NCBI RefSeq assembly: GCF_006345805.1 | Contig: NC_043000.1 | Location: 95,666,001 to 95,730,000 of the forward strand | Source of the DNA: Octopus sinensis | Lineage: Eukaryota | Direction: 5' to 3' | DNA: 64,000 bases | In this document: positions 811 to 61,991 of the stretch, one piece after another | How the letters are laid out: the number at the start of each line of letters is the position of its first letter | Numbering within the stretch: the first letter of the stretch is position 1 | Position numbers and translations under genes: made by a program | Notes under the pieces: generated by a model | What the model was told of the DNA's origin: nothing | What the model saw: the letters and a program-made list of their open reading frames with translations, nothing else | Databases searched by the model: none

Positions 811-2038
811 ACACTCGCATGTAAATAGAAATAAATAGACACCCTTATAATCGTTAAACTTTATTTAAATCTGGAATTATACATTCAAATTATTTATTAA
901 TTATTATAATCTGAATTCTAATATTTAGTAGACATACCCTTTTCATTTTTCAATGCAAGGACCCTATTAGGCATGCTACTGATCTGATGATGCATATTCT
1001 CTTGAGGAATTTCTTGCCAAGTTTTATGCAGTAATCTCAAAAGATCTGGCTTTGAAGATGCTTTCTTGTTCTTTTTATGAAGTGCCCTGTCTATCTCCTA
1101 GAGATGTTCAGTAGGGTTCATATCTAGTAACTAGCTTGGCCGTGGAAGCTATTTAATGTCATTCTCATCCAACAAATATTGGGTCGTTTTAGCTATGTGA
1201 CAAGGAGCCCCATCTTCCATAAATAAAGAGTCTTTAATCATTTCACCACTGAAGAAGATTGGAAGGAGTCCTTTCTGCAATATAGACACATATTTATCTG
1301 AGTTTATATTTCTCTAACACTCCATCAGCTCTGATCAACCATTGCTCCCCAGAATAGCTGCCATATTTAATTGTTGGCTTCGATCTTTTTATGTCAAATT
1401 CTGGATCACAGTCTCCAGACCCACACTCGACCATTGTTAGAAAGTACAGCAAATCCGGATTCATCAGAGAATATGACAGTGTCCCAAAATGCTAGTGACC
1501 TTTCCACCATCTCACTGGCCCAATCATTTCCCCTCTTGATATTGGCTGGTCGAAGAAGAGGCTTCTTTGTTGCTGCTCTGCCATAGTAGCCAAGTTTGTG
1601 GCAATACCTGACAGCTGTTCTGGGACTGACATCAACTTGTTCTGCTATGTCAGAGACCTTACAACAAAAATTATCCCCCACATTTCTCTTAACAAAGCAA
1701 ATGGTCCTGTCAGAGGGTCCTGGTCAACCTGGGTGAGGTGATGTGGACTCCTTCCCCTCTCTGGTGAATTGCAAAATCACTCTATTAACTGTAGAAAGCA
1801 GGATCCCAAGGTTTTCTGCAGTTTTACACTAAGTCCACCTTCGGATTAACCTACAATATGGCTTCTTTGAAATTCAGACAGTTCCAAGGTTTTTTTTTTG
1901 TACATAGCATTATCAAATAGTCACCTATAGAACCTGAAACATAAAGATATCAATTAATAAAAGATATAAACCATTTCAATTTAAAATAAGCATGGAACAA
2001 TGTTTATGGGATGTCTATTTACTTCTGTCATGTGCGTG
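811..2038 (-). mobile_element. Decayed Tc1-family DNA transposon in DNAJC12 intron 1
   Basis: Track ORF 1406..1681 has the Tc1 HTH and FWDTVIFSDES motif. Downstream frames give EDGAPCH, DMNPTEHL and MPNRVLALKNEKGMSTKY* (stop 918-920) with internal stops. Imperfect TIRs lie at about 811-844 and 2008-2038, next to TA or CA runs. Confidence 0.88.
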
Positions 2039-3755: not shown

Positions 3756-6309
3756 GTGAGATTATAATGCATATTCACTACTTATACTCATATACATATA
3801 ATGTTATTCCTTAGCTTTCTCAATGGTTTCAGTCAGTTCACTGTGGCAATGTTGGGGTACCATTTTCAAGGGTTTAAGTTGATTACAAGAAAACTGGTAC
3901 TTTATCCTGTACCTTATCAACATCGGAAGAAGAAAAATTATATCCAAGAACGAAGGGAGGCAACTAAGATTGATTGAAATTATTTTCTTTCACGGCTTTT
4001 TTTTTTTTTTTTTTTTGCATAAGTTCTCTTCTATAATATCCTTCACTGACGAATTTAGTTTTTAGACAAGGGCTGATTAGAGTCAGCTATCAGCTGAATG
4101 TAAGAGTTATTGAATAGAGACAGTGTAGAATGGGATAGAAAGGACTTTAGTTTTGTCCAAGGACATGACACCATTTCTAGGTTTGGTGTCATGAGAAAGT
4201 GCACCTAGTTCACTCTGTAAATAAATCGGTATAACTGGAAGTGCATCCAGCTGTAGAAATCATACAAAAAAAAAAAAAAAAGTTTGGAGAGGAATGTGCC
4301 ATCTCTGATACATCAATAGGGAAATAACTCCAAATAAGATCTGACTTGAACTTTGATGAATCATACAACCCATGCCACCATAGAAATGATGGATGATGGT
4401 GGTGTTGGTGATGACAACTGTCTACTCATTGTCATCATCATCATTTAGCATCTGTTTTCCATACTGGCATAGGTTAAAAGGTTTGAATGGAATTGGTAAG
4501 CCAGGGAGCTGTACCAGGTTCTAATCTGATTTTGGCTTGGTTTCTACAGCTAGATGCCCTTCCTAGTGCTAACCATTCCAAGAGTGTAGTGGGTGCTTTT
4601 ACATGTCACTGGCACAAGTGCCTTTTACGTGTCACCAACATTGGTTCCTTTACATGTCACCAGCACAGATGCCTTTTATGTGTCAGAGTTAAATCATACT
4701 GACTAAAGTTAGCAACACCCACAGAATTTTACATTTTCACAACACTTCATAAACCTCCTCCATTCTATCAGCATGATCAAGAGACAAGCCAAGGCAAAAT
4801 ATTGGGTGTTAAATAGTATCACAGGTCACAAGGCCTGGGATCATTGTGATGTTCAGCAGGCCTATCATCATCGTTTTATGTCAGCTGTCCATGTCCTTGC
4901 TGCAATTTGTCAAGAGCTTTCTTTTGATTTTACTATATGATGCAAAAGTCCAACAATTGTTGAGTGACCAATGTTTAATTCTTCAGCAATGTCAAGTCGT
5001 TTTGCATGGAACTGCTTCAGCTATGAGCCTCGGTTGTTATCAGTCTCAGAATGTCATTCATAACCTTCTTTATATTCAGATCTTTCGTCTTCACCATCCA
5101 CAAATGTGGTGATTTTTATGCACGCACGCACACACACACGCACTCACTCACACACACATATCATTGTTGTCATCATTCTTATGGCAGTTTGTTTCAGTGA
5201 TGGCATGAGTGAATTTTATGAAGGCATTGTTCTTCAACAAATGCAACTTTGTGATGCCAACTCTTACTTGAAGTAATAATAAGCTTATAGTATACCATGC
5301 ACTACAACTCATCAGGAAAAGAGGAAGTAGAAAGCAGTAATAAGTCAAGTAAGGACAGACTGCAATGATAATCAAAAGTAGATGCATAGTATGCAGAATA
5401 AGACACAAAAAGATAGGCAACTGAACAATAAAAGAACCACAAAGAAGAAAGAGTGCATAAGCATGTTAAATGTAGTATTTTCGAAAGATGCAGTGGCCTA
5501 ACAATTAACAATGAATGTGGGTAGTTTATTCCAAGTTTCAACAATTCTGAGCTTGGAAAAATGTTTTTGAAAGTCATAGGTGCTGTGTTGTGTTTTTGTT
5601 CTGTTTTTTTTTTTTTTTTCATTTTACAAGGAAGTTCATGGGTGGTAGATGTATTGAATTCAAAAAGCTGACCAAACTTGTTTTTAGGAAAATGGTGGAT
5701 AGTCTTGTTGGCTTCTGCCAAGTCAATTGTTAGGCATCAAAGCTTTAGTTCAGAGAAACAAGACATTCACGATATATCTAAGTGAAATGAAGGAATATAT
5801 TTGTCTGGTTACATGTCTCTGGACAGTTTATTTTCAAGTAAGACCCTTTATTTTCATGTTTTATTTTGTTTGTTTGTTTTTTTACAACATTGAATCATTG
5901 GGCTGCCACATTTTTTTTGTTTATGTGGGACTTCAATTTATCACCACTCCCCTGGTGATGTCAAAGTTAAAAGACACAGACATGTGTGCATCATGCACAT
6001 CCATCCATACACACATACACACACACATCTTACTAAGGTAAATTAAAACTAATATACATAACCATATCTGTATTACAGACATCTATTCTTTCACATGTTT
6101 CAGTCATTTATTGTGGCCATGCTGGGGCAATGCCTTGAAGTTTGAGTCGAATGAATTGACCCCAGCACTTCTTTTTTAAGCCTGGCACTTATTCTAGTGG
6201 GCCCTTTTGTTGAACTGCTAAGTTATGGGAACATAAACACACCAACACTTGTTGTGAAGCAGTGATAGGGGTACACACAGACACAAAGACACTAAAAGAT
6301 ATATATATA

Positions 6310-6740
6310 TGTACCACATGAGTGAGATCGTTGCCAGAGCAACAAGCTGGCCTCCGTGCCGATGGCACGTTAAAAACACCATTCGAGTGTGATCGTTACC
6401 TGCATCGCCTTACTAGCACTTGTGCTGGTGGCACGTGAAAAAACATTCGAGCGAGGTCATTGCCAGTGCCACTGGACTGGCTCCTGTGCAGGTGGCACAT
6501 AAAAAGCACCATTTGAGCGTGGCCGTTGCCAGTACCGCTTGACTGGCCCTTGTGCCGGTGGCACGTACAAAGCACCCACCACACTCTCGGAGTAGTTGGC
6601 GTTAGGAAGGGCATCCAGCTGTAGAAACTCTGCCAGATCAGATTGGAGTCTGGTGCAGCCATCTGGTTTGCCAGACCTCAGTCAAATCGTCCAACCCAAG
6701 CGAGCATGGAAAGCGGACATTAAACGATGATGATGATGAT
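6310..6740 (+). mobile_element. Non-coding RTE-tail element with four diverged ~62-bp units
   Basis: Four related units are followed by the shared tail CACCCACCACACTCTCGGAG...GGAAGGGCATCCAGCTGTAG...AAACGATGATGAT. Confidence 0.85.
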
Positions 6741-6787: not shown

Positions 6788-8374
6788 CATACATACAACA
6801 GGCTTCTTTCAGTTTCTGTCTACCAAATCCACTCACTAGGCTTTAGTTGGGCTGAAGCCATAGTAGAAGACACTTGCCCAAGGTGTCACACAGTGGAACT
6901 GAACTTGTAACTATGTGTTTGGGAAGCAAGCTTCTTACCACACAGCCATGAAGAGAGTGGATAACAGAGACATCTATGTAAACTTTTTTTAACAGTTTCC
7001 TAATTAACTAATTGAAAAAGAAAATCAGTCTTTTTTGAACTGATATAAACACAGGCAGAGTGTTTTGAGTGGCAAATGAAAATAAATAATAAATTTATGA
7101 AGTGTTATAAAGATGAGTTTTTGCATGGGATATCTACATGTGCTTGGAAACAAATGAGAAGTGACATCAAGATGTGTATCTTGCTATAGAAAACTTCTGC
7201 CTCGATATAACATCTTTTGACCCATATGAGCACGAAAAATATAGATGCTATAATGATGATAGTGGTAGTGGTTGTGTGATGGTGGTGGTTGAATGGGAGT
7301 TATGTATTCATCACTGAATGTGTGTTGTGTGTTTAGCAAGACATTAAAACATCACTGCTCTACTTAAGTTGACATTAAGTGCTGACAAGAAATGAATAAA
7401 GAATGTGAATAGTAGAAATGGCTGATATGGAATACTAAACTAGCTAAAACTGATTTTTCAAAAGGCATTTTGCCTTCTGCTTTTTTTTTTTTTTTCAAAC
7501 TCAGATACTCTTTTGTAATTTCTAGCTTCCATTTCTAGTGCCACTCATTAGGATGAAATGTGGGAAGTCTATTTATTATGCAAAAAAAAAAAAAAAGCTC
7601 TGAAGGGATTTTCTTTCAAAGACTATCTTAAATTTAAAATCATTTCTCATCCTTGAAAGAAACTAGGTCATCATCATCATTATCAACATTTAACGTCCAT
7701 TTTTCATGCTGGTATGGATTGAACAACTTTACAGGAACTGGTAAGACCAAGGTCTGCACCAGGTCCTATAGTTTGTTCCATAGAGGTCATTTATAGTAAT
7801 TCATTCATTCATTTAATGTCTATTTTTCCATGCTAGCATGAGTTGGATGAATTCATATTATTGGTGCTTTTTATTACACATTGATGTCCTTCTTGTTCCT
7901 AATACTCAACAGTTTTTAAAATAAGTGAGCTTTTATTTCACATATCTCTGCAAACAAAGTGCTACTAGATGACTTATTGACAGATGCCTGCAAACATCAT
8001 TGTTTTTAGCTCAATACTTTTCAAGTGAAGTGAGGGATCTAAACATTCACACATATACATATATCACACACATACACATATTATGATCAGAGAAACTAAA
8101 GAGAGGAGGGTTGCATGGAAAGGAAAAGTTCTACTGGGCCCTGCCTCTGCTCTTACATGCTCCCCACCATCACCAACTGTAACTGTGGGTTTTATGCCAA
8201 TATGGGCTTAAAATCCAGTTACAGTTATAGTGACAGCCACTCCATAAAAGGCATTTGGTGCTAGTCCCACATAAAAAGCACTGGTATTGGTGCCATGTAA
8301 AAAGCACCCTGTACACTCTGTAAAGTAGTTGGTATTGTGTGAGAATAACTTAGACATTATGAAATAAATAGATT

Positions 8375-9135
8375 TAATAATAATAATGAAACTATTGTAT
8401 ACAGTGCTCAGGTGCACCGCAACTTGTCAAAAGTGCATATAAAGCATATGCAGTAATGTACAAATGTCTGGAAAGTGAACAGTGTGTGAGTCAGATACAT
8501 GCTTGTGTGTGTATGGAGGGGAGAAAATCAGGTGTAGTGTTGGTGAATCTCAGGAAGCATGGAAGTTTTGAAGGATGCAGTGCTCCAACAACTAACAACT
8601 GATGCTGGCAGTTTATTCCATACTTCAGCAACTCTTAGCGTAAAAAAATGTTTCTGAAAGTCATGGGAGCTGTGCTGTTTTCTGACTTTGTAAACATGTC
8701 CAAGGGTGTTAGACAGGTGGAGTTTGAAAAGGTGCTCAGAGTTATTGTTTGTAAGATGGTTAATAATTTTATGGGTGTCTGCCAAGTCAGCTGCCAGATG
8801 TCGGAGTTTCAATGTATCTATGCCCAGGGAAGTAAGGTGTTCAGAATATGGCAAATGCCTGATGGAGGGTATTCTCTTGGTTGCACAACGCTGAACGGTT
8901 TCCAGACGATTAATATCCTGGGCAAGATAGGGGTTCCAGACTGATGATGCAAATTCCAGATGAGATTGCACCATAGCTATATAAAGCCTCAGATGGATAG
9001 CTGGAGAGTGGCTCACAAAGGACTTGGTGAGTGATGCCAAGACACCCTCAGCCTTCTTGGCAATTTTAGCAATGTGTTTTGTCCAACGCAAATTGCTTTG
9101 TCTAAGATCACTTAAAATATTTACAATGAAACATT
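8375..9135 (-). mobile_element. 5'-truncated CR1/L2-clade LINE (ORF2 C-terminus, 3' UTR, (TTA)n tail)
   Basis: The 187-aa ORF 8528..9091 contains LYIAMVQSHLEFASSVWNPY...LETVQRCATKRI...KHFFTLRVAEVWNKLP, typical of the CR1 ORF2 end. An (ATA)n run lies at about 8376-8386. Confidence 0.9.
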
Positions 9136-14720: not shown

Positions 14721-15329
14721 ATGTTAGAGGGCACATGGCCTAATGATTAGGGTGTTGAACTCATGATCTAGTTAGTGATCATTATTTCAATTCCTAGATC
14801 TGGTGGTGCATGAGTTCTTGAGCAAAAAAACTTCATCTTACATTGTTCTGCAGTCACTTCAACACCTGATGCATGGTGCACAATGCACCTTTTCAGACAA
14901 CATTGATTTGATGGAAAGACTGAGCTAATTTGCAGTACAAACATTTGATCACTTTAAACAAATCATTTGTGCAGGTCATTTGGCAAAAGCTGAATGCTCA
15001 TGCAAACCCTTTAGCATTCAAGATTATTCTGTTAAATGCAATGTTTGTTTATTCATATTGTTTTGAATTAATCATGCATTATCTTGTAGCTTCAGGATAC
15101 CAGTGATCTGCTTGTTTATTCTTAGAATAGCATTGTAGGGTTGGGGTAAGAGGCTGGATCTGGCCAGTTTCAACATGAAACAGGTTAAATATTTTGGCCT
15201 GATGTGGCTGGTTTGAATGCTGAAGGGTTTATGATGTAAATTAACATGAAATTTTAATGGAAGGTTTTAATTTAGATCTCTTTAAAATGGGAAGTTTGTT
15301 CTATAAATCTAAGAGCAGTCTCAGTCAAT

Positions 15330-15760
15330 CATCATTGTTTAATGTCTGCTTTCCATGCTAGCATGGGTTGAATGATTTGACTGAGGTCTGACGAAGCAGA
15401 TGGCTGCACCAGACGCCAACCACTCCGAGAGTGCAGTGGGTGCTTTTACGTGCCACCAGCACGAGGGCCAGTCAGGAGGTACTGGCAATGGCCATGCTCA
15501 AATGGTGCTTTTTATGTGCCACCTGCACAGGAGCCAGTCCGGCAGCACTGACAACGACCTCACTCAAATGTTTTTTTCTCGTACCACCAGCACAAGTGCC
15601 AGTAAGGCAATGTAGGTAACGATCACACTCGAATGGTGTTTTTTACGTGTCACTGGCATGGAGGCCAGCTTGTTGCTTTGGCAATGATCACACTCGTATG
15701 GTACTCTTAGCGCACCACTAGCACGGATGCCAGTCATTGAATTTGATTTAAAACGGTCTA
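15330..15760 (-). mobile_element. Non-coding RTE-tail element, same subfamily as 6310-6740
   Basis: The reverse complement shows the same ordered set of diverged units and the same tail. Confidence 0.85.
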
Positions 15761-27131: not shown

Positions 27132-27404
27132 CTGGAAAGAAATAAAAGTTTATTATATTCAAATATTCATCACTGAACTACTATTGAAAACAGCTATAAC
27201 AAAGAAGGATGTAATACAATCACTAATATTATTTCATTATATTAAGTGAATCAATTAGAGTAAAATGATTCTGGCCAATTTAGTTAGAATTATCAACATC
27301 CTCAATATTTTGCATGACATGAAAGGATTACAACTAGAATAAGGCAAATTGAACTGATTTTGCTTAGATTGAAAAACTTTTGGATAATGAATTTGTTGAA
27401 AATA

Positions 27405-27865
27405 ATTTGGTCATGTGATGCATATGGATGGGGACAACAACATAAAGCGTCGAGCTCTAATTGTGGAAGGAACCTGTGGAAGGGATAGACCCAGAGGACA
27501 CGGGACGAAGTGGTGAGAAAGTATCTTCAGACACTGGGCCTCACTGAGGAAATGGCAAGGGACTGGGAAATGTGGCAATTTGTTGTGCTTGATAAGACTC
27601 ATCAAGTAAAAACCGGTGTCCTCCATAAACATGGGCTTGTCCTTTCATGTGCCAGTGCCACTTAAAAAGAACTCATGCCAGTGCTGTGTAAACACACATA
27701 AAAAGTACCCAGCACGCACTTAAGTGGTTGGGTTAGGAAGGGCATCCAGCTGTAAAAACCATGTCACAACAGACAATTGTAGTCTGGACAACTCCCAGCT
27801 AGCCAACTACATGTCAAACCATCCAACCCATGCCAGCATAGAAAACAGACATTAAATGATGATGA
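27405..27865 (+). mobile_element. Older 5'-truncated RTE LINE end (ORF C-terminus plus tail)
   Basis: GHVMHMD...VEGTCGRDRP...DEVVRKYLQTLGLTEEMARD is homologous to the C-terminus of the 31069..32286 ORF. It is followed by the shared ...GGAAGGGCATCCAGCTGTA...(GAT)n tail. Confidence 0.8.
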
Positions 27866-28295
27866 GTCTATGAAGAAAACATAGAAATCATAAGACATTA
27901 ATCTAGTGCTACTGTCACAAGTGGCTATTTAAGTATAGTGGCTAATATCAAAAGTTTATGTGAAGATGAATATTATCCATATAAATTACTAGGATATATT
28001 GCAACAACAGCACTTTTACAACACAAATTGTCTCAAATTACATGAGCCATGAACTAACAATGTGTACTATTTTGAAGACCAAAAAAATTGCAGTAAGCAA
28101 GCTAGAATAATCTATTATGCTTTATATGCAAAATCTTGTTTTTTCAGTATAAATCCAACATCTTCAAAAAGAAAAAAGTTATATAAATACATGGAGTTAG
28201 AGAGGAACAAAACAATTGTAAAGTTCTTAAATTTATTTTCACTAATCTTGTTTTTCTTAATGATTTTTAATAAATTCAATTGTATGATACCATAC

Positions 28296-28485
28296 CTCAT
28301 CATCCTCAGCATCATTTGTCTCAGTTTCATCATCACTTTCATTCTTAATATGAGCTGGAACTATGATACCATTGGTCTTGCCAGAAATAGCTTCCTTTAT
28401 TGTGGTACAAGGAGACTTTACAGATGAATTGATTCCTTCAGTTTCAGTTTTAGACTCAGAAGAATCTTCTCCAATTTCTCGCCAC
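28296..28485 (-). CDS. KANSL1: KANSL1 internal exon (190 nt)
   Basis: ttaccag|G TGG CGA...GAT GAG|gtatgg completes TPK-W of the PEHE domain: WREIGEDSSESK...NDAEDDE. Confidence 0.9.
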
Positions 28486-29060
28486 CTGGTAAACAATAAT
28501 ATTTTCTTTATAAAGATATGAAATTTAAGAAATGATTTAAAATTACATTACATCAATAAATTTATTTGGATACATTTAACCTTTTAACCCATGAACTGGA
28601 AGTTTAAATTCATAAACTCAAAGCTGACCAAAAAAATCCAAGAAAAACAAGGAGAAACTACAATCGTGGAAGTTTACAATTGTTCAATGATGAAGTGAAT
28701 TATAATTAAATTACAGTGTTTTTAAAATACAAGTAAAATATTTCAAGCAAAAGGGTCCCTAAGAGTCTCAAATACTGAACAGCAGGTACTTTTTAACCCT
28801 TTAGCATTCAAATTACTGTGTCAAATGTCATGCTTATTTATTCATGTTTTGAATTTATTTAAAGAATAATATTCTAAGATAGGTTTGAGAGGCTAGATCT
28901 AGCCAGTTTTAAATGTTAAAGAGTTAAGCAAGGTATCTTATTGTATTTACTGGGTAATGATCTAATTCTATGTTGCAATCCTACAAGAGATATTCTCATA
29001 ATGGCAGTGTTTCCCCTGTCTTATATTTCTCTATAGGTAAAGTTATTTATAAAAACTCAC

Positions 29061-29331: not shown

Positions 29332-30339
29332 CTGTGAACAAAAAAAAAATAAAATAAGCTTAAAAATGCTGTTTAAATAAACAAAATCAATGAACAATTC
29401 AAATAGTACCAATTTAATTTATCATTATTAAATACAACTCCTTATTAGCCTATCAATATCTCCAAGATTAAATAATTGAGGAAAAAAGAGAAAATACATT
29501 ATATACACCTATATCTAATTTTCTTTCCTTACTACTAACCAACACACACACACTCTTCTCCCGCCATTAGACCCGTCCCTACCACTCGGTATTGACATCA
29601 CCTTGTCCCCTTCCTATCACTTTCTACCTCTATCATGTAGCTCATGCTGTACCAATAACAAACATGTAGTTATTTCCTTTCATTTTTCATACTGTACATT
29701 CTGGTTTTCTCCCTTTATTCTTTTATCCATCAACTTCGTTTTTTGACATTGAATAAACAGAAACAGTGTAAAATAGTGATGTAGAGAGAACTCTTTAGTC
29801 TTGAAACGTCTCTAGAATTAGTGCTTCAATAGAATGTATATCATGCACTCATTGGTTGGTCTCGAGGAAAAGTATCCAGCTGTAGAACTCATGCCAAAAA
29901 TGCAAGATACAGCAAAGTGTTCTCCAAATAGGAACTGACTTACGCCATAAAGGTAAGCACAGAGAAATGTAAAACAATGATGAAACTCGATATTTAAGTA
30001 GGTCAAACTGCATAACATCTAGCAAAGTTAAGAATTATCTCCCCTTCTTGCCAGTGCTGGTACACTGACAAATGCAAACATGCTGCAGTTTCTCTGAAGA
30101 TAATTTCCAAAATATTAAAGAAGTATAATTTATTTTCAAGGATTCTAGACCAAAATTTCCTGACTACTAGGTCCAACAAAACTATCACAGAAAAAGTAAA
30201 CTGCAGAACAGAGCTATTTTTAAATGTAAGTTATATTTGAAAATAACTATCAAAACAGAAAAAGCATAAAATTAAAATTGCCAAACCAAATAGTCATATG
30301 CTATAAGATGAATACCTACTAGTCATTTGATTAACTCAC

Positions 30340-30531
30340 CAATAGCCAACTGTGCTGCCCTGCGTTTCTTGATTTCAGTTCTACAGAGACGTTTATCTGT
30401 CACTTTGTTTTGTGGAGTTGTAGGCAGAGAGGACGATGTGGCTGATGATGTGGTCATAGTCAGTGAGACAGGTGAAGTTGAAGGTGGACGAGATTTCTGT
30501 ACAGGTTTTTTGTCATATCGACTTCTGAATT
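30340..30531 (-). CDS. KANSL1: KANSL1 internal exon (192 nt)
   Basis: ttttcag|AA TTC AGA...ATT G|gtgagt reads (K)FRSRYDKKPVQKSRPPSTSPVSLTMTTSSATSSSLPTTPQNKVTDKRLCRTEIKKRRAAQLAI. It is stop-free and phases 1/1 fit the neighbours. Confidence 0.85.
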
Positions 30532-30538
30532 CTGAAAA

Positions 30539-33046
30539 TTGGAGATGCCACTATGAAAGTTTGCTGAATAAAGAAAATGAATGGGATAAAGAGAGTCTGC
30601 CAAATGTTGACCCAACAGAGGGACCAGCTATCCGAGTTGATAGTTCCGTAGTAGCTAAGGCAGTTAGGAGCATGAAGACAGGGAAAGCCCCAGGCCCATC
30701 AGGAATTACTGCAGAGATGCTCAAAATATCTGGCAGTGTCGGCTATAACCTAGTCACCCGTATAGTCAACCAGGTGATACACGAAGGAGTCATACCCAAT
30801 GACTGGTGTAGCAGCATACTAGTCAACTGCTACAAAGGTAAAGGTGATGCCCTGGATACAAATAATTACAGAGGTATCAAGCTGTTGGATCAGGTAATGA
30901 AGGTTACGGAGAGGGTCTTAGCCCAACTAATTAGAGAGAGAGTTAGTTAGATGAGATGCAGTTTGGGTTTGTCCCAGGGAAAAGCACCACTGATGCTATA
31001 TTCCTGGTAAGGCAGCTGCAGGAGAATACCTAGCCAAGGATAAGCCCCTGTACCTGGCTTTTGTTGACATGGAGAAAGCCTTTGATAGGGTCCCCCGATC
31101 CCTCATCTGGTGGTCAATGAGGAAACTAGGGATAGATGAATGGCTGGTGAGGGCTGTGCAAGCCATGTACAGAGATGCCGTAAGTAAGGTTAGAGTTGGC
31201 AACATGTACACAGAAGAATTCAAAGTAGAGGTTGGGGTCCACCAGGGTTCAGTACTCAGCCCCCTCCTATTTATCATAGTCCTCCAGGCAATAACGGAGG
31301 AATTCAAGTCCGGTTGCCCCTGGGAGCTCCTCTATGCTGACGACCTCGCTCTAATCGCTGAGTCACTATCAGAACTGGAGGAGAAGTTCCAGGTGTGGAA
31401 GGAGGGTTTAGAATCGAGGGGCCTTAGAGTCAACCTAGCTAAAACCAAAGTACTAATAAGTAGAAAGGTAGAAAACCCACAAATATCATCAGGAAGATGG
31501 CCCTGTTCGATCTGTAGAAAAGGTGTAGGTAGAAACTCTATAAGATGTACCCAGTGTAAGCTATGGACACATAAGAGGTGCAGCAATGTCAAAGGTAGGC
31601 TAACTGGGAAGATAGTTTTTGTATGTGGCAGGTGCTCTGGAGCACTGACCTCCGAAAATCTGCAGAAAACAACTTCTGTCACTTTCCGGGGGGAAAAACT
31701 AGAAGTAGTTGATAGTTTCCGCTATCTAGGTGACCAAGTCAGTAGTGGGGGTGGGTGCGCTGAAAGTGTAACTGCTAGAATAAGAATAGCCTGGGCAAAG
31801 TTTAGGGAGCTCTTACCTCTGCTGGTGACTAAAGGCCTCTCGCTCAGAGTAAAAGGCAGACTGTATGATGCATGTGTACGAACAGCTATGCTACATGGCA
31901 GTGAAACATGGGCCGTGACTGCTGAGGACATGCGTAAGCTCGTGAGGAACGAAGCCAGTATGCTCCGATGGATGTGTAATGTCAGTGTACTTACTCGACA
32001 GAGCGTTAGTACCTTGAGAGAAATGTTGTACCTAAGAAGCATCAGTTGTTGTGTGCAAGAGAGACGATTGCGCTGGTATGGTCATGTGGCGAGAATGGAT
32101 GAAGAGAGGTGTGTGAGAAAGTGCCAATCCCTAGCAGTTGAGGGAACCCGTGGAAGAGGTAGACCCAGGAAAACCTGGGACGAGGTGGTGAAGCACGACC
32201 TTCGGACGTTAGGTCTCACCATGGAAATGACTAGAGACCGAGACCTATGGAAGTATGCTGTGCGTGAGAAGACCCGGCAAGACTAGTGAAGCCATAATCC
32301 GTGGCCCCTACCTGGGACGTAGTCAGTCCACCTGTGCATACCTTCCTTCTTGTGACACTTGTGAAGACCTGTTGAGGCAGTGAGAATCGAATCGAATCGT
32401 ATCAAATCAAATCGAACCAAATCAAAATAGATGAACATCAATGGAATTTGTATCCTTGTGGTACCAGTGCCGGTGGCACATAAGAAAACCATCCGAACGT
32501 GACCGTAGCCAGTACCGCAATGACTGGCCTCCGTGCTGAGGGCACGTAACAAACACCATCCGAGCGTGGCCGTCCACCAGCCTCGTCTAGCACCTGTGTC
32601 GGTGACACATAAGAAAACACCATCCGAGCGTGGCCGTCTGCCAGCCTCGTCTGGCACCTGTGTCGGTGGCACATAAAAAACACCATCCGAGCGTGGCCGT
32701 CTGCCAGCCTCGTCTGGCACCTGTGTCGGTGGCACATAAAAAAAAAAACACCATCCGAGCGTGGCCGTCTGCCAGCCTCGTCTGGCACCTGTGTCGGTGG
32801 CACATAAAAAACACCATCCGAGCGTGGCCGTCTGCCAGCCTCGTCTGGCACCTGTGTCGGTGGCACATAAAATCACCCACTACACTCTCGGAGTGGTTGG
32901 CGTTAGGAAGGGCATCCAGCTGTAGAAACACTGCCACATCTGACTGGCCTGGTGCAGCCTTCGGGCTTCCCGACCCCAGTTGAACCGTCCAACCCATGCT
33001 AGCATGGAAAGCGGACGTTAAACGATGATGATGATGATGATGATGA
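30539..33046 (+). mobile_element. Young 5'-truncated RTE-clade LINE (RT, PHD-like finger, 3' UTR array, (GAT)n tail), antisense to KANSL1
   Basis: Continuous RT homology from WRCHYESLLN through QFGFVPGKSTTDAIF, FVDMEKAFDRVP, GVHQGSVLSPLLF and LLYADDL to the stop at 32286. Only two 1-nt frameshifts occur (about 30948 and 31026). CpGs are retained and the element ends in (GAT)7-8. Confidence 0.96.
32554..32872 (+). repeat. Tandem array of five 63-68 bp units in the RTE 3' UTR
   Basis: Units CACCATCCGAGCGTGGCCGTCTGCCAGCCTCGTCTGGCACCTGTGTCGGTGGCACAT(A)n start at 32554, 32618, 32681, 32749 and 32812. Confidence 0.95.
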
Positions 33047-33386
33047 ATAGAAACCAGTTAATACTTGACAATCTCCAACATATTTCTGCAATTGTAAACC
33101 TCTTCCCAAATATACATATATATTTATTCATACACAAAGTAAATGTAATTTATCAGTTGTTAATTTTCTGCTACAATGGTTAAGAGTTAGTTGCACATTT
33201 CTAGAAATGTGCTGGAAGAACCATCTATTTTATCCAAGATGGGTATAATTAGAGTATGCAGCACTGTCAAGATACAAGAGATATCACTAATGACAGGATA
33301 AGAATCATTAAGTCATTTTCATATCCATTTAGTGATTCTATTTATTTAAAGAAATAAATTTAATAAGTATTTCTAAAGACACTTAC

Positions 33387-33469
33387 TAGCTGATGACAGC
33401 AACACTGCTGCAGCATTTTTCAACTTTTTGCTGGTACGCCGAGCTTCATTTTGTAAAAGTTTTTGCCTT
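33387..33469 (-). CDS. KANSL1: KANSL1 internal exon (83 nt)
   Basis: atttccag|A AGG CAA...GCT A|gtaagt reads (R)RQKLLQNEARRTSKKLKNAAAVLLSSA. Phases 2/1 fit both neighbours. Confidence 0.85.
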
Positions 33470-53764: not shown

Positions 53765-54546
53765 CTTGAGAAAAAGATAAAACTGGATGAAAAGAAGGAT
53801 CCAAAAGTGACAACCTTTCATGTAAAGGCATGAGGTCAGGATCTAAAGTTTGAGTGTTATTATAACGTCCTCCACACATAGCACAAGGAACAACTGGAGT
53901 ATAACAATGACATTTTACAGTTGAAAGACGAGTAGCTTTTCGATATAACTGGTGCAAACCAGCAGTTCGAAATAGTTTCCTTTTTCTGTAGCTTTTTACA
54001 GGGCGACACCTTGCAGCCTGACATGTAACATCAACAGGCACAGTAGGTGTAGCTAAGGATTCTGAATTCTCTAACAGTAGCTTATCATCAGTCTTTACTG
54101 TTGGTGAAGCTACATCACTGGTTGAAACACTTTTTCCGTTATGGTTACTATCAATTAATCCATTTAAGGATTTCTGTGTTGAGGACTGACAAGTGTCTTT
54201 ACCACTAGACATTGGTGATGTCAGACCAGGAGGTAAAATGCAGTTAACTAATGACTGATTAAATTTTGAGGACTGAAAAACAAAGGGTTTATTAGATTTT
54301 TCTGTTCTCTTCTCTCCACTTTTTTCCTCTTGATTAAGGATTTCTCCTGTCCGTGAATTATATGTTACAGGTTGAGTTTGTAGAGATTCAAATATCAAGT
54401 CCCCTTTCTCACTTCGTATTTGTCTGTGTGTATCACTTTGCTGTCGTATTCGATATTCCAAATCAGAAACTTGAGCCTGTAACCAAGTCCATCGTGAAGC
54501 AATGGCGGAACGCTCAGCAGCCCATTTCCATTCAGATCTTCGATGA
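53765..54546 (-). CDS. KANSL1: KANSL1 (NSL complex subunit 1) internal exon, first visible in the window; includes the WDR5-binding (WIN-like) motif
   Basis: ttttcag|T CAT CGA...TCT CAA G|gtgag, 782 nt. Reads HRRSEWKWAAERSAIASRWTWLQAQVSDLEYRIRQQSD...TCQAARCRPVKSYRKRKL...LDPSFHPVLSFSQ, matching the KANSL1 motifs RWxWLQAxVSDLEYRIRQQ and AARxRPV. Extends the track ORF 53709..54461. Confidence 0.95.
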
Positions 54547-60337: not shown

Positions 60338-61092
60338 ATAGTACTCATTTGGCTAATAGCAAATAACCATTAGTAAAAAACAAAACAATTCAAGTAAAAT
60401 ACCAACATGCCAACACACTTGATACCAGGCAAAATTCACAATATCATACTGAATAAGTTATATAATGACAATAATATTGTTACTATATTATTTCACTATT
60501 CCAGTATACCATAAAAATAAACTGGTTTCTAATTTAAACATGAGATTTTTGGTGAAACAAAAACCACCAACTAAGCAGTTATCACACTAAAACCATTTTA
60601 AGATGTAGATATCACAAAAGCATCACAAACCAGACATGATTTGAAAGCCTTCACAAGTCTCATTCACACCTGCCTATAATGTCTCATTGTTGAGTCAAAT
60701 GCAACGCTCAAAAAAATCTTGTCTTTTGTGCTGTTGAATATGTGTCAGACAACTGATTACTTCAAACCAGACCTTATGACCAAAAGAAGGAAACCCTGTG
60801 TGTGTGTGAATGTTTCATAAGTACCTTATACTTAACCTCTATATCAGATTTAAGTATAGGATGAAAGATTCTGCAAATTCCGACATTTGTATGGATCAGA
60901 GAAAATATTACCAACGCAGTGATAAAACACTGGACAAAATAATTAGTTTTATAATTTAGTTACATCTATTTACATTTTCAATTTAGATTGCCCCCTGGCT
61001 AATTTTGCTTTCTTTCATTTTTTAGCGTCAAGTATATTTACATACAGTAATGATGTGCCTATCTCCTCTCTCGTACTGTGTGTGTGTGTATA

Positions 61093-61800
61093 TCATCATC
61101 ATCATCATCATTTAACGTCCGCTTTCCATGCTAGCATGGGTTGGACGGTTCAACTGGGGTCTGGGGAGCCCGAAAGCTGCACCAGTCCAGTCAGATCTGG
61201 CAGTGTTTCTACAGCTGGATGCCCTTCCTAACGCCAACCACTCCGAGAGTGTAGTGGGTGATTTTATGTGCCACCGACACAGGTGCCAGACGAGGCTGGC
61301 AGACGGCCACGCTTGGATGGTGTTTTTATGTGCCACCGACACAGGTGCCAGATGAGGCTGGCAAACGGCCACGATCGGATGGTGTTTGTTACGTGCCCAC
61401 TGCACGGAGGCCAGTCGATGCGGTACTGGCTACGGCCACGGTCGGATGGTTTTCTTGTGTGCCACGTGCCACCGGCACTGGTACCACAAAGATACAAATT
61501 CCATTGATGTTCATTTGTTTTGATTTTCACTTGCCTCAACAGGTCTTCACAAGTGTCACAAGAAGGAAGGTATGCACAGGTGGACTGACTACGTCCCAGG
61601 TAGGGGCCACAGGTTATGGCCTGACTAGTCTTGCCAGGTCTTCGGATGGTGTTTTTATGTGCCACCGACACAGGTGCCAGATGAGGCTGGCGAACGGCCA
61701 CGATCGGATGGTGTTTGTTACGTGCCCACAGCACGGAGGCCAGTCGGTGCGGTACTGGCTACGGCCACGTTCGGATGGTTTTCTTGTGTGCCACCGGCAC
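61093..61800 (-). mobile_element. Short young copy of the RTE at 30539-33046 (3' UTR plus last codons), with an extra 5' block
   Basis: The reverse complement is near-identical by eye to 32270-33040 (ORF end GAAGACC.GGCAAGACTAG, UTR, (GAT)n tail). Bases 61644-61800 duplicate 61316-61480. Confidence 0.92.
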
Positions 61801-61991
61801 TATATTCATTATTATCGTTTAGCATCCGCCTTCCATGCTAGCATAGTCTGGACAGTTTGACAGGAGCCTGCAGACAGCTGGATGCCCTTCCTAACATCAA
61901 CCACCCAGCAGAGTAGACAGTGCTTTTTATGTTGCACAAGCTATATATATATATATATATACACACACACATACATACATACACACACACA

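Follow-up and report, generated by a model that had tools for sequence, protein, structure and literature searches.

Can a conserved internal exon go on being spliced correctly once a retrotransposon has come to lie within a few nucleotides of its acceptor AG, and is such an arrangement an accident or an evolved regulator? This question is raised by a 64,000-nt stretch of the Octopus sinensis genome (assembly GCF_006345805.1, contig NC_043000.1, positions 95,666,001 to 95,730,000; below, the window, numbered from its first letter), in which a truncated long interspersed nuclear element (LINE) occupies the 3' end of an intron of the KANSL1 gene, immediately before the exon here called exon D. 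KANSL1 is haploinsufficient, that is dosage-sensitive, in humans and is essential in other animals. We consider it probable that the insertion is recent, tolerated or mildly harmful, perhaps still polymorphic, and not an evolved regulator, and that splicing to position 30531, the first nucleotide of exon D, continues.

KANSL1 Gene and Conservation of Exon D

The gene in question lies on the minus strand and is the KANSL1 orthologue, as the sequence-only reading of this locus had proposed; the window holds its 3' two-thirds. A query composed of the window exons retrieved 91 proteins, and those of them that bear names are annotated as "KAT8 regulatory NSL complex subunit 1", "KANL1" or "PEHE domain-containing protein". 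The PEHE domain (PF15275) is present in many homologues recovered with the window exons. In the window itself, exons E and F joined match the PEHE profile with E=7.3e-8 and 33.4 bits, compared to the curated cutoff of 34, in a model that lacks one exon between these two; the same domain scores 37.1 bits in the homologous protein P0219. No single window exon matches the profile alone, and nothing in the PDB matched the PEHE exon in a sequence search.

The exon map was built by tblastn with KANSL1 proteins of the bivalve Solemya (P0074), the annelid Capitella (P0073) and an insect (P0058), as well as with the 1147-aa protein P0219, which has to derive from a spliced mRNA because its 3.4-kb open reading frame (ORF) lies on a 4.9-kb contig. 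Six exons have been identified, all open and collinear on the minus strand: A (~54546-53745), B (39620-39525), C (33387..33469; 83 nt, ending in phase 1, donor GT at 33386-33385), D (30340..30531; 192 nt or 64 codons, phase 1 to phase 1, AG at 30533-30532, GT at 30339-30338), E (29331-29060) and F (27131-26010, with the stop codon after the conserved DPNDPEW...LAKR). The translation of exon C, RQKLLQNEARRTSKKLKNAAAVLLSSA, aligns with RRQKLLVTEKDLARKTSRKLAKQAVLFSSA of Solemya. The conserved blocks WTWLQAQVSDLEYRIRQQ, CQAARCRPVKSYRKRK, HFEALLKSGEWQ, SAK(F/I)R and KRRRAAQLA follow each other in an order common to the window and to Solemya, Capitella, insect and vertebrate KANSL1.

The best named match to the window gene is that of Solemya (54%), while the best match to exon A has 98% amino acid and 82.6% nucleotide identity and hence comes from a sister species. 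The most conserved block across all KANSL1 matches is TCQAARCRPVKSYRKRK in exon A (53970-54010, minus strand), which presumably corresponds to the WDR5-binding arginine motif of human KANSL1. Between the segments corresponding to exons E and F, relatives carry ~15-50 residues (WRD...) for which no match was found in the respective part of the window (27132-29059, minus strand), and probably a short, poorly conserved exon is missing here from the gene model. The window has a G+C content of 33%, and KANSL1 introns are 3-14 kb long.

The boundary of exons C and D is conserved. With the acceptor at 30531, and only with it, the junction is in frame, restores the conserved motif ..SSA-K-(F/I)R.(R/K)Y.. 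and reads ..AVLLSSA-K-FRSRYDKKP.., its counterparts being SSAKIRNKYDGK in Solemya, LSAKIRSKYEQKP in Capitella and SAKIK in insects, and P0219 reads LLTSAKIRNKYEGK...KRRRAAQLAIAALKR across the junction. Accordingly, the AG at 30532..30533 on the minus strand (ttttCAG|AATTC) is the sole one that keeps both the frame and the SAK(F/I)R junction. In a more distant relative, represented by a genomic contig in six sequencing runs (L001-L006), exon D is 75% identical and has the same borders, with the acceptor ttttctcttccag|AATTCCGAAG (cttccag|AATTCCGAAG) and the donor CAATTG|gtaagt. In this relative, 60 nt free of AG precede the acceptor, and the available 200 nt contain no LINE.

Judged by the junction conserved in Solemya, Capitella and insects, by its presence in P0219 and by the identical borders in L001, exon D is real, old and normally included. 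The sequence-only reading had treated disuse of this 192-nt exon in orthologues as fatal to its argument; the exon turns out to be conserved, with its junction present in a transcript-derived protein. The coordinates that it had given for the exon (30531-30340) and its AG (30533-30532) are reproduced here.

Structure of the LINE

The LINE is placed on the plus strand, antisense to KANSL1, and extends from 30534-30540 to 33044. It is 5'-truncated and its 2508 nt constitute 88% of the 2855-nt intron between exons C and D; the native part of the intron is the 339 nt at 33048..33386 (minus strand), ending with ..gtattaactggtttctattca beside the LINE tail. The coding remnant (30534..32286, plus strand) comprises a truncated reverse transcriptase (RT) and a C-terminal region, is distributed over three frames and has no in-frame stops. 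Its translation matches RVT_1 (6.9e-19, 68.8 bits), and tblastn alignments of relatives are split into frames 3, 2 and 1 by two frameshifts, at ~30947-30956 and ~31027. Further downstream, a PHD-like zinc finger is encoded at 31504..31635 (plus strand; PF00628, E=2.4e-4, 21.5 bits, under the 24-bit cutoff, which the same domain passes in the LINE relatives P0108 and P0094).

The stop at 32286 is followed by a 3' untranslated region (UTR) of ~740 nt (32287..33023, plus strand), which contains a 63-bp tandem repeat (5.2 copies, 93% matches, 32541-32872) and a 15-bp repeat (2.9 copies, 32384-32426). The RTE clade is usually described with short 3' UTRs, and the bulk of repeats in this one is unusual. 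The element ends with an uninterrupted (GAT)7GA tail (33024..33046, plus strand), after which ATAGAAACCAGTTAATAC is read.

The 5' end was located using the conserved motif W(K/R)xHYExLLN, whose W is the TGG at 30540-30542. Of the codons that precede this W, the nearest two (GAA AAT, 30534-30539) fit the family pattern K-E-(A/V)-W, while the third, TCT, does not; hence the first base of the LINE lies within 30534-30540, that is 1-7 nt from the acceptor AG, in agreement with the claim that LINE sequence begins by about 30539. In terms of longer relatives (~880-1016 aa), the copy starts at approximately residue 290-430.

We observe 2963 homologues of the LINE protein across animals, with ~50-58% identity, the closest protein being 74% identical. 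Full-length relatives in this 50-58% range are 960-1016 aa long and combine an endonuclease (APE, PF03372), RT (PF00078) and PHD; the window copy has no endonuclease part owing to its 5' truncation, and the single-ORF architecture is read from the relatives. A short tandem repeat in place of poly(A) at the 3' end is typical of RTE. Because of the single-ORF APE and RT arrangement in relatives and of the trinucleotide tail, we provisionally call the element RTE-like: the RT, the tail and the relatives all agree with its earlier designation as an RTE LINE, the clade label itself being kept provisional.

The window contains further copies of the LINE end, at 4426-4622, 6347-6740, 7668-7763, 15328-15709, 27723-27865 and 61092-61914, which share only its last ~100-550 nt, comprising 3' UTR repeats and the tail region, at 72-92% identity and resemble SINE-like (short interspersed nuclear element) or heavily truncated relatives; the one at 61092-61914 apparently consists of two or more nested copies. 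At the other end of the LINE, a 207-aa ORF (30327-30950, plus strand) runs from the antisense of exon D into the RT frame. This chimera has arisen by chance, and annotation pipelines or ORF callers might mistake it for a gene.

Insertion Junctions and the Empty Site

Both the 5' truncation and the intact 3' tail are hallmarks of target-primed reverse transcription, by which, we infer, the element was inserted. Evidence on the target site is thinner. The tetranucleotide TGAA does occur at both LINE ends, as had been pointed out before: at 30533..30536 (plus strand), sharing one base with the acceptor AG, namely its A, and at 33044..33047 (plus strand), where all but one of its four bases can be read as a continuation of the (GAT)n tail. 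It is therefore weak evidence of a 4-nt target-site duplication, since TGA is also the unit repeated in the tail, and the LINE may itself start with the codon GAA.

When the flanks are joined as the sequence-only reading suggested, the result, ..caagtattaactggtttctattcag|AATTC, has the appearance of an acceptor, complete with CAG and, 15 nt upstream, ttaAc. It does not surpass the present acceptor in strength: the pyrimidine content is 0.61 in both, and the rebuilt site has its own AG 19 nt upstream. This reconstruction gives no ground for the supposition that the insertion worsened the polypyrimidine tract. There are two ways to account for the result: even before the LINE arrived no acceptor of the gene was weaker, or the insertion removed some of the target sequence. 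Comparison with L001 does not distinguish an exact insertion from one with a target deletion, as its intron has diverged so far that it shows no significant similarity to the native intron of the window (local score 21, compared to a shuffle mean of 20.4, next to 75% identity in the exon). The empty allele was not found by exact look-ups of the 44-aa exon-D ORF and the 207-aa chimeric ORF in the protein collection, in which the species of the window is apparently not represented, nor did exact-pattern scans of the metagenome and prokaryote-genome collections yield any match to a 22-mer that occurs both in the window and in L001.

Age of the Insertion

The LINE was dated by the integrity of its ORF in place of a family consensus, as the closest protein is 74% identical and the copies in the window share only the tail. 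There is not a single stop in 1755 coding nt. In simulations of random substitution, the coding pieces stay free of stops with a probability of 0.50 when 1% of the bases are substituted, 0.25 at 2%, 0.14 at 3%, 0.026 at 5% and 0.004 at 8%. Moreover, the observed-to-expected CpG ratio is 0.41-0.56 in the LINE, compared to 0.26-0.30 in the flanking introns. Decay of the LINE is low, and the absence of stops, the CpG level and the clean tail indicate that it is probably fairly young, with under ~5% decay. The nearest species found differs by ~17% in intron DNA, and given the lower decay of the LINE the insertion probably postdates the split from that species. Hence the earlier description of the element as young finds indirect support, with the qualification that the copy carries two frameshifts. 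Recent activity in Octopus, as well as expansion in cephalopods, has been described for RTE-type LINEs (PMC10294476, PMC9115989).

Splice Signals and Frame Outcomes

Splice site strength was gauged by the pyrimidine content at positions -22 to -5, run length, AG-free distance and yUnAy motifs. Up to exon D, the gene-sense strand reads ctctctttatcccattcattttctttattCAG caaactttcaTAG tggcatctccaattttCAG|AATTCAG|AAG, where everything upstream of about -2 to -8 is antisense LINE. The true acceptor keeps its AG, the C at -3 and a T4C run, with the moderate tract tggcatctccaattttc. The yUnAy scan yields a branch-point-like, LINE-derived ttcAt at 30553..30557 (minus strand), whose A at 30554 is 22 nt upstream of the true AG and could act as the branch point.

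Two more AGs are contributed by the LINE. The first one, tAG at 30551..30552 (minus strand), would add 19 nt to exon D, shift the frame and, after 12 codons, lead to a stop within the exon. It is situated 2-3 nt downstream of A30554, so near that a branch point there would mask it sterically. The second one belongs to a cryptic 3' splice-site unit (30564..30590, minus strand), which consists of two yUnAy motifs, tttAt (A 30587) and ttcAt (A 30578), 23 and 14 nt upstream of the +32 site, respectively, followed by the tract cattttctttatt and the CAG at 30566-30564, and represents the antisense of purine-rich LINE codons for LLNKENEWDKES. Use of its AG (30565-30564) adds 32 nt, shifts the frame and creates a TGA within exon D, farther in than the stop of the +19 form. 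The pyrimidine content at this +32 site is 0.83, compared to 0.61 at the true acceptor and 0.72-0.89 at the gene's other five acceptors, none of which has an AG within 25 nt; the better tract of the +32 AG had been noted before and is here measured. Thus, the LINE appears to provide two competing 3' units, one productive and the other not, between which the traffic would be shared.

The set of possible outcomes is wider than previously described. Both LINE AGs do shift the frame, as claimed, but the stop in exon D is not limited to the +32 form, and two outcomes had been overlooked: a fourth AG and skipping of the exon. The fourth AG, TTCAGAATTCAG|AAG at 30525..30526 (minus strand), lies 7 nt inside exon D and, if used, also shifts the frame and leads to a stop in this exon. 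Its position is CCG in L001, and so the AG is particular to the lineage of the window. The intron/exon border here (30520-30540, minus strand) is a tandem TTCAGAA TTCAGAA, which gives this second CAG 7 nt into the exon. With all three shifted acceptors (+19, +32 and -7) the premature stop falls in exon D, and exons E and F follow downstream; in many animals, nonsense-mediated decay (NMD) acts on premature stops placed in this way ahead of exon junctions.

Skipping of exon D, the most frequent result when an acceptor is damaged, is in frame, as 192 = 64 x 3, and would yield a KANSL1 protein without the SAK(F/I)R...KRRRAAQLA segment, not a null. In humans, retrotransposon insertions at 3' splice sites mostly lead to skipping of the downstream exon.

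An in-frame acceptor further upstream within the LINE is ruled out, since the exon frame reaches TAG at 30552-30550. Read in the gene's sense, the LINE portion of the intron contains neither AATAAA nor ATTAAA that would signal premature polyadenylation. A donor close to the consensus, GAG|GTAAGT, is present in the antisense LINE at 31994 (minus strand) and could pair with a LINE AG to form a pseudo-exon.

Interpretation of the Locus

According to the reading that we prefer, a 5'-truncated RTE-like copy would have entered, by target-primed reverse transcription, the end of a KANSL1 intron of originally ~340 nt, at a point between the old polypyrimidine tract and the AG, leaving the AG, exon D and the reading frame intact. 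The native branch point and tract would thereby have been displaced 2.5 kb upstream, and 3' splice signals other than the AG would now be supplied by antisense LINE coding sequence. Productive splicing to 30531 would most likely proceed via the LINE branch point A30554 and the tract tggcatctccaattttc, the +19 AG being too near the branch point, while the +32 unit probably takes some of the transcripts. Transcripts with the +32, +19 or -7 acceptor would carry a premature stop and be lost to NMD, and in-frame skipping of exon D would be one more possible leak. Tolerated replacement of a splice signal, one of the two options left by the sequence-only reading, is thus plausible and is the option we prefer, given that the LINE offers a branch-point-like ttcAt at a normal distance.

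Several points weigh against this reading. The use of 30531 from the insertion allele is an assumption, which rests on the gene being otherwise intact and on KANSL1 being essential elsewhere. The +32 site surpasses the true acceptor both in pyrimidines (0.83 vs. 0.61) and in AG-free distance (31 vs. 17 nt), and if the first AG after an upstream branch point were selected by scanning, the frameshifted product would be favoured. In human NF1, exons are skipped when an Alu has inserted in the polypyrimidine tract or the AG of their acceptors (PMC3219598). Nor is the copy brand new, given its two frameshifts. Finally, with the empty site unrecovered and the 4-nt duplication weak, a deletion at the target site is possible.

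Some of these observations can be read as signs of a loss-of-function or strongly hypomorphic KANSL1 allele, heterozygous or at low frequency, on the haplotype that happened to be picked by the assembly, with splicing going mostly to the +32 or +19 AG or skipping exon D. This seems to us rather unlikely, yet it is the alternative that survives best. The +32 unit outscores the true acceptor, and two AGs are found within 32 nt, compared to none within 25 nt at the other five acceptors. Skipping of the downstream exon is what retrotransposons in the NF1 acceptor tract or AG produce (PMC3219598), and AGs that newly arise in the exclusion zone have spliceogenic effects (PMC7317903). A young element is also what one expects of an allele not yet purged. 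Haploinsufficiency of KANSL1 in humans speaks for this alternative as well. On the other hand, the AG, the C at -3, the T4C run and the branch-point-like motif at a normal distance make correct splicing mechanistically possible, and a copy with two frameshifts has evidently been in place for some time, unless its template was already damaged.

We are more doubtful still about a fixed insertion on whose branch point and tract KANSL1 has come to rely, with a sizeable share of +32 and +19 transcripts passing to NMD and the output of the gene reset or made tunable.

The other option of the sequence-only reading, a regulated unproductive-splicing switch in which the LINE AGs set KANSL1 dosage through NMD, is highly improbable. 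As that proposal implies, whichever of the two upstream AGs is used, the frame ends prematurely in exon D, ahead of at least two further exon junctions. However, known switches are conserved, while this one is young, lineage-specific and absent from L001, which has neither the LINE nor any AG within 60 nt; the poison site itself lies within the young LINE, its cryptic acceptor is merely the antisense of the purine-rich codons for LLNKENEWDKES, and nothing in it indicates regulation.

An assembly artefact (repeat-induced mis-join, somatic or chimeric read) might be suspected in a repeat-rich region where the LINE tail recurs at least six more times, but it has very little to recommend it, as a clean microsatellite tail abuts unique intron sequence, the 5' truncation falls in the coding region, there is a possible 4-nt duplication, and the unique sequence runs correctly into exons C and D on either side.

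Comparison With Known Systems

The closest known parallel is provided by Alu and L1 insertions in 3' splice sites of NF1 (introns 10, 14, and 48; PMC3219598), where four Alu insertions in the tract or acceptor AG were reported to cause exon skipping (Wimmer et al., 2011). In both cases an endonuclease-dependent retroelement has landed at the tract or AG in a dosage-sensitive gene, displacing the splice signals and leaving the exon untouched. The NF1 alleles, however, arose de novo, cause human disease and have been documented to skip the exon, while the KANSL1 case concerns an RTE-like LINE in an invertebrate reference assembly, with the AG kept and with antisense sequence that may substitute for the lost signals.

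The AG exclusion zone was defined by Gooding et al. (2006; PMC1431707): AGs are normally excluded between the branch point and the acceptor, and new ones result in mis-splicing or exon skipping (PMC1431707, PMC7317903), AGs introduced there being among the main classes of splice mutations (Wimmer et al., 2020; PMC7317903). The extra AGs 19 and 32 nt upstream of exon D resemble violations of this zone, for which use of cryptic acceptors or exon skipping is expected. Unlike those cases, which are point mutations in an existing interval between the branch point and the AG, the whole interval in KANSL1 is new, one of the AGs is maybe upstream of the branch point, and the other may be too near it to matter.

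Antisense LINEs are a source of usable splice sites, e.g., mouse L1 (PMC2176070), and here, as in LINE and Alu exonization, an antisense retrotransposon gives pyrimidine tracts and AGs. Exonization, though, makes new, usually alternative exons, while the LINE in KANSL1 would serve, or compete with, the acceptor of an old and conserved constitutive exon.

Among described RTE LINEs of molluscs and cephalopods (RTE-2_OV and an O. bimaculoides RTE, PMC9115989; RTE-BovB, PMC10294476) we find likewise single-ORF APE and RT relatives, a non-poly(A) tail and recent activity. RTE-2_OV differs in having an N-terminal C2H2 finger and a 1109-aa ORF (PMC9115989), while the window LINE, compared with it by description, has a PHD-like finger after the RT and a ~740-nt 3' UTR with 63-bp tandem repeats.

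Other Elements in the Window

An ORF fragment at 1406-1681 (minus strand) is similar to the helix-turn-helix of Tc1/Tc3-type transposases (PF01498, 27.2 bits, under the 31.5-bit cutoff) and is probably a decayed DNA transposon. A 187-aa ORF at 8528-9091 (minus strand; ...VWNPY...LE.VQR.A.K.I...) has no Pfam match; it presumably resembles the C-terminal region of a different LINE family.

Significance

Events of this kind are already well known, and in either case the observation concerns a single locus and introduces no new principle; what is unusual is its place, in a reference assembly and at a conserved exon of KANSL1, a gene to whose dosage humans are sensitive. A defective allele would be a segregating KANSL1 hypomorph produced by a recently active LINE; it would bear on the debated question of what LINE activity costs these genomes, and it would matter for the gene model of the assembly, as pipelines could choose the wrong acceptor or call the 207-aa chimeric ORF. 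If, on the contrary, the allele is functional, an essential conserved exon survives full replacement of its branch point and tract by an antisense retrotransposon, which would indicate how little native intron a 3' splice site needs, and the filled and empty alleles would make a ready minigene system for studying the choice of AG in a non-model animal.

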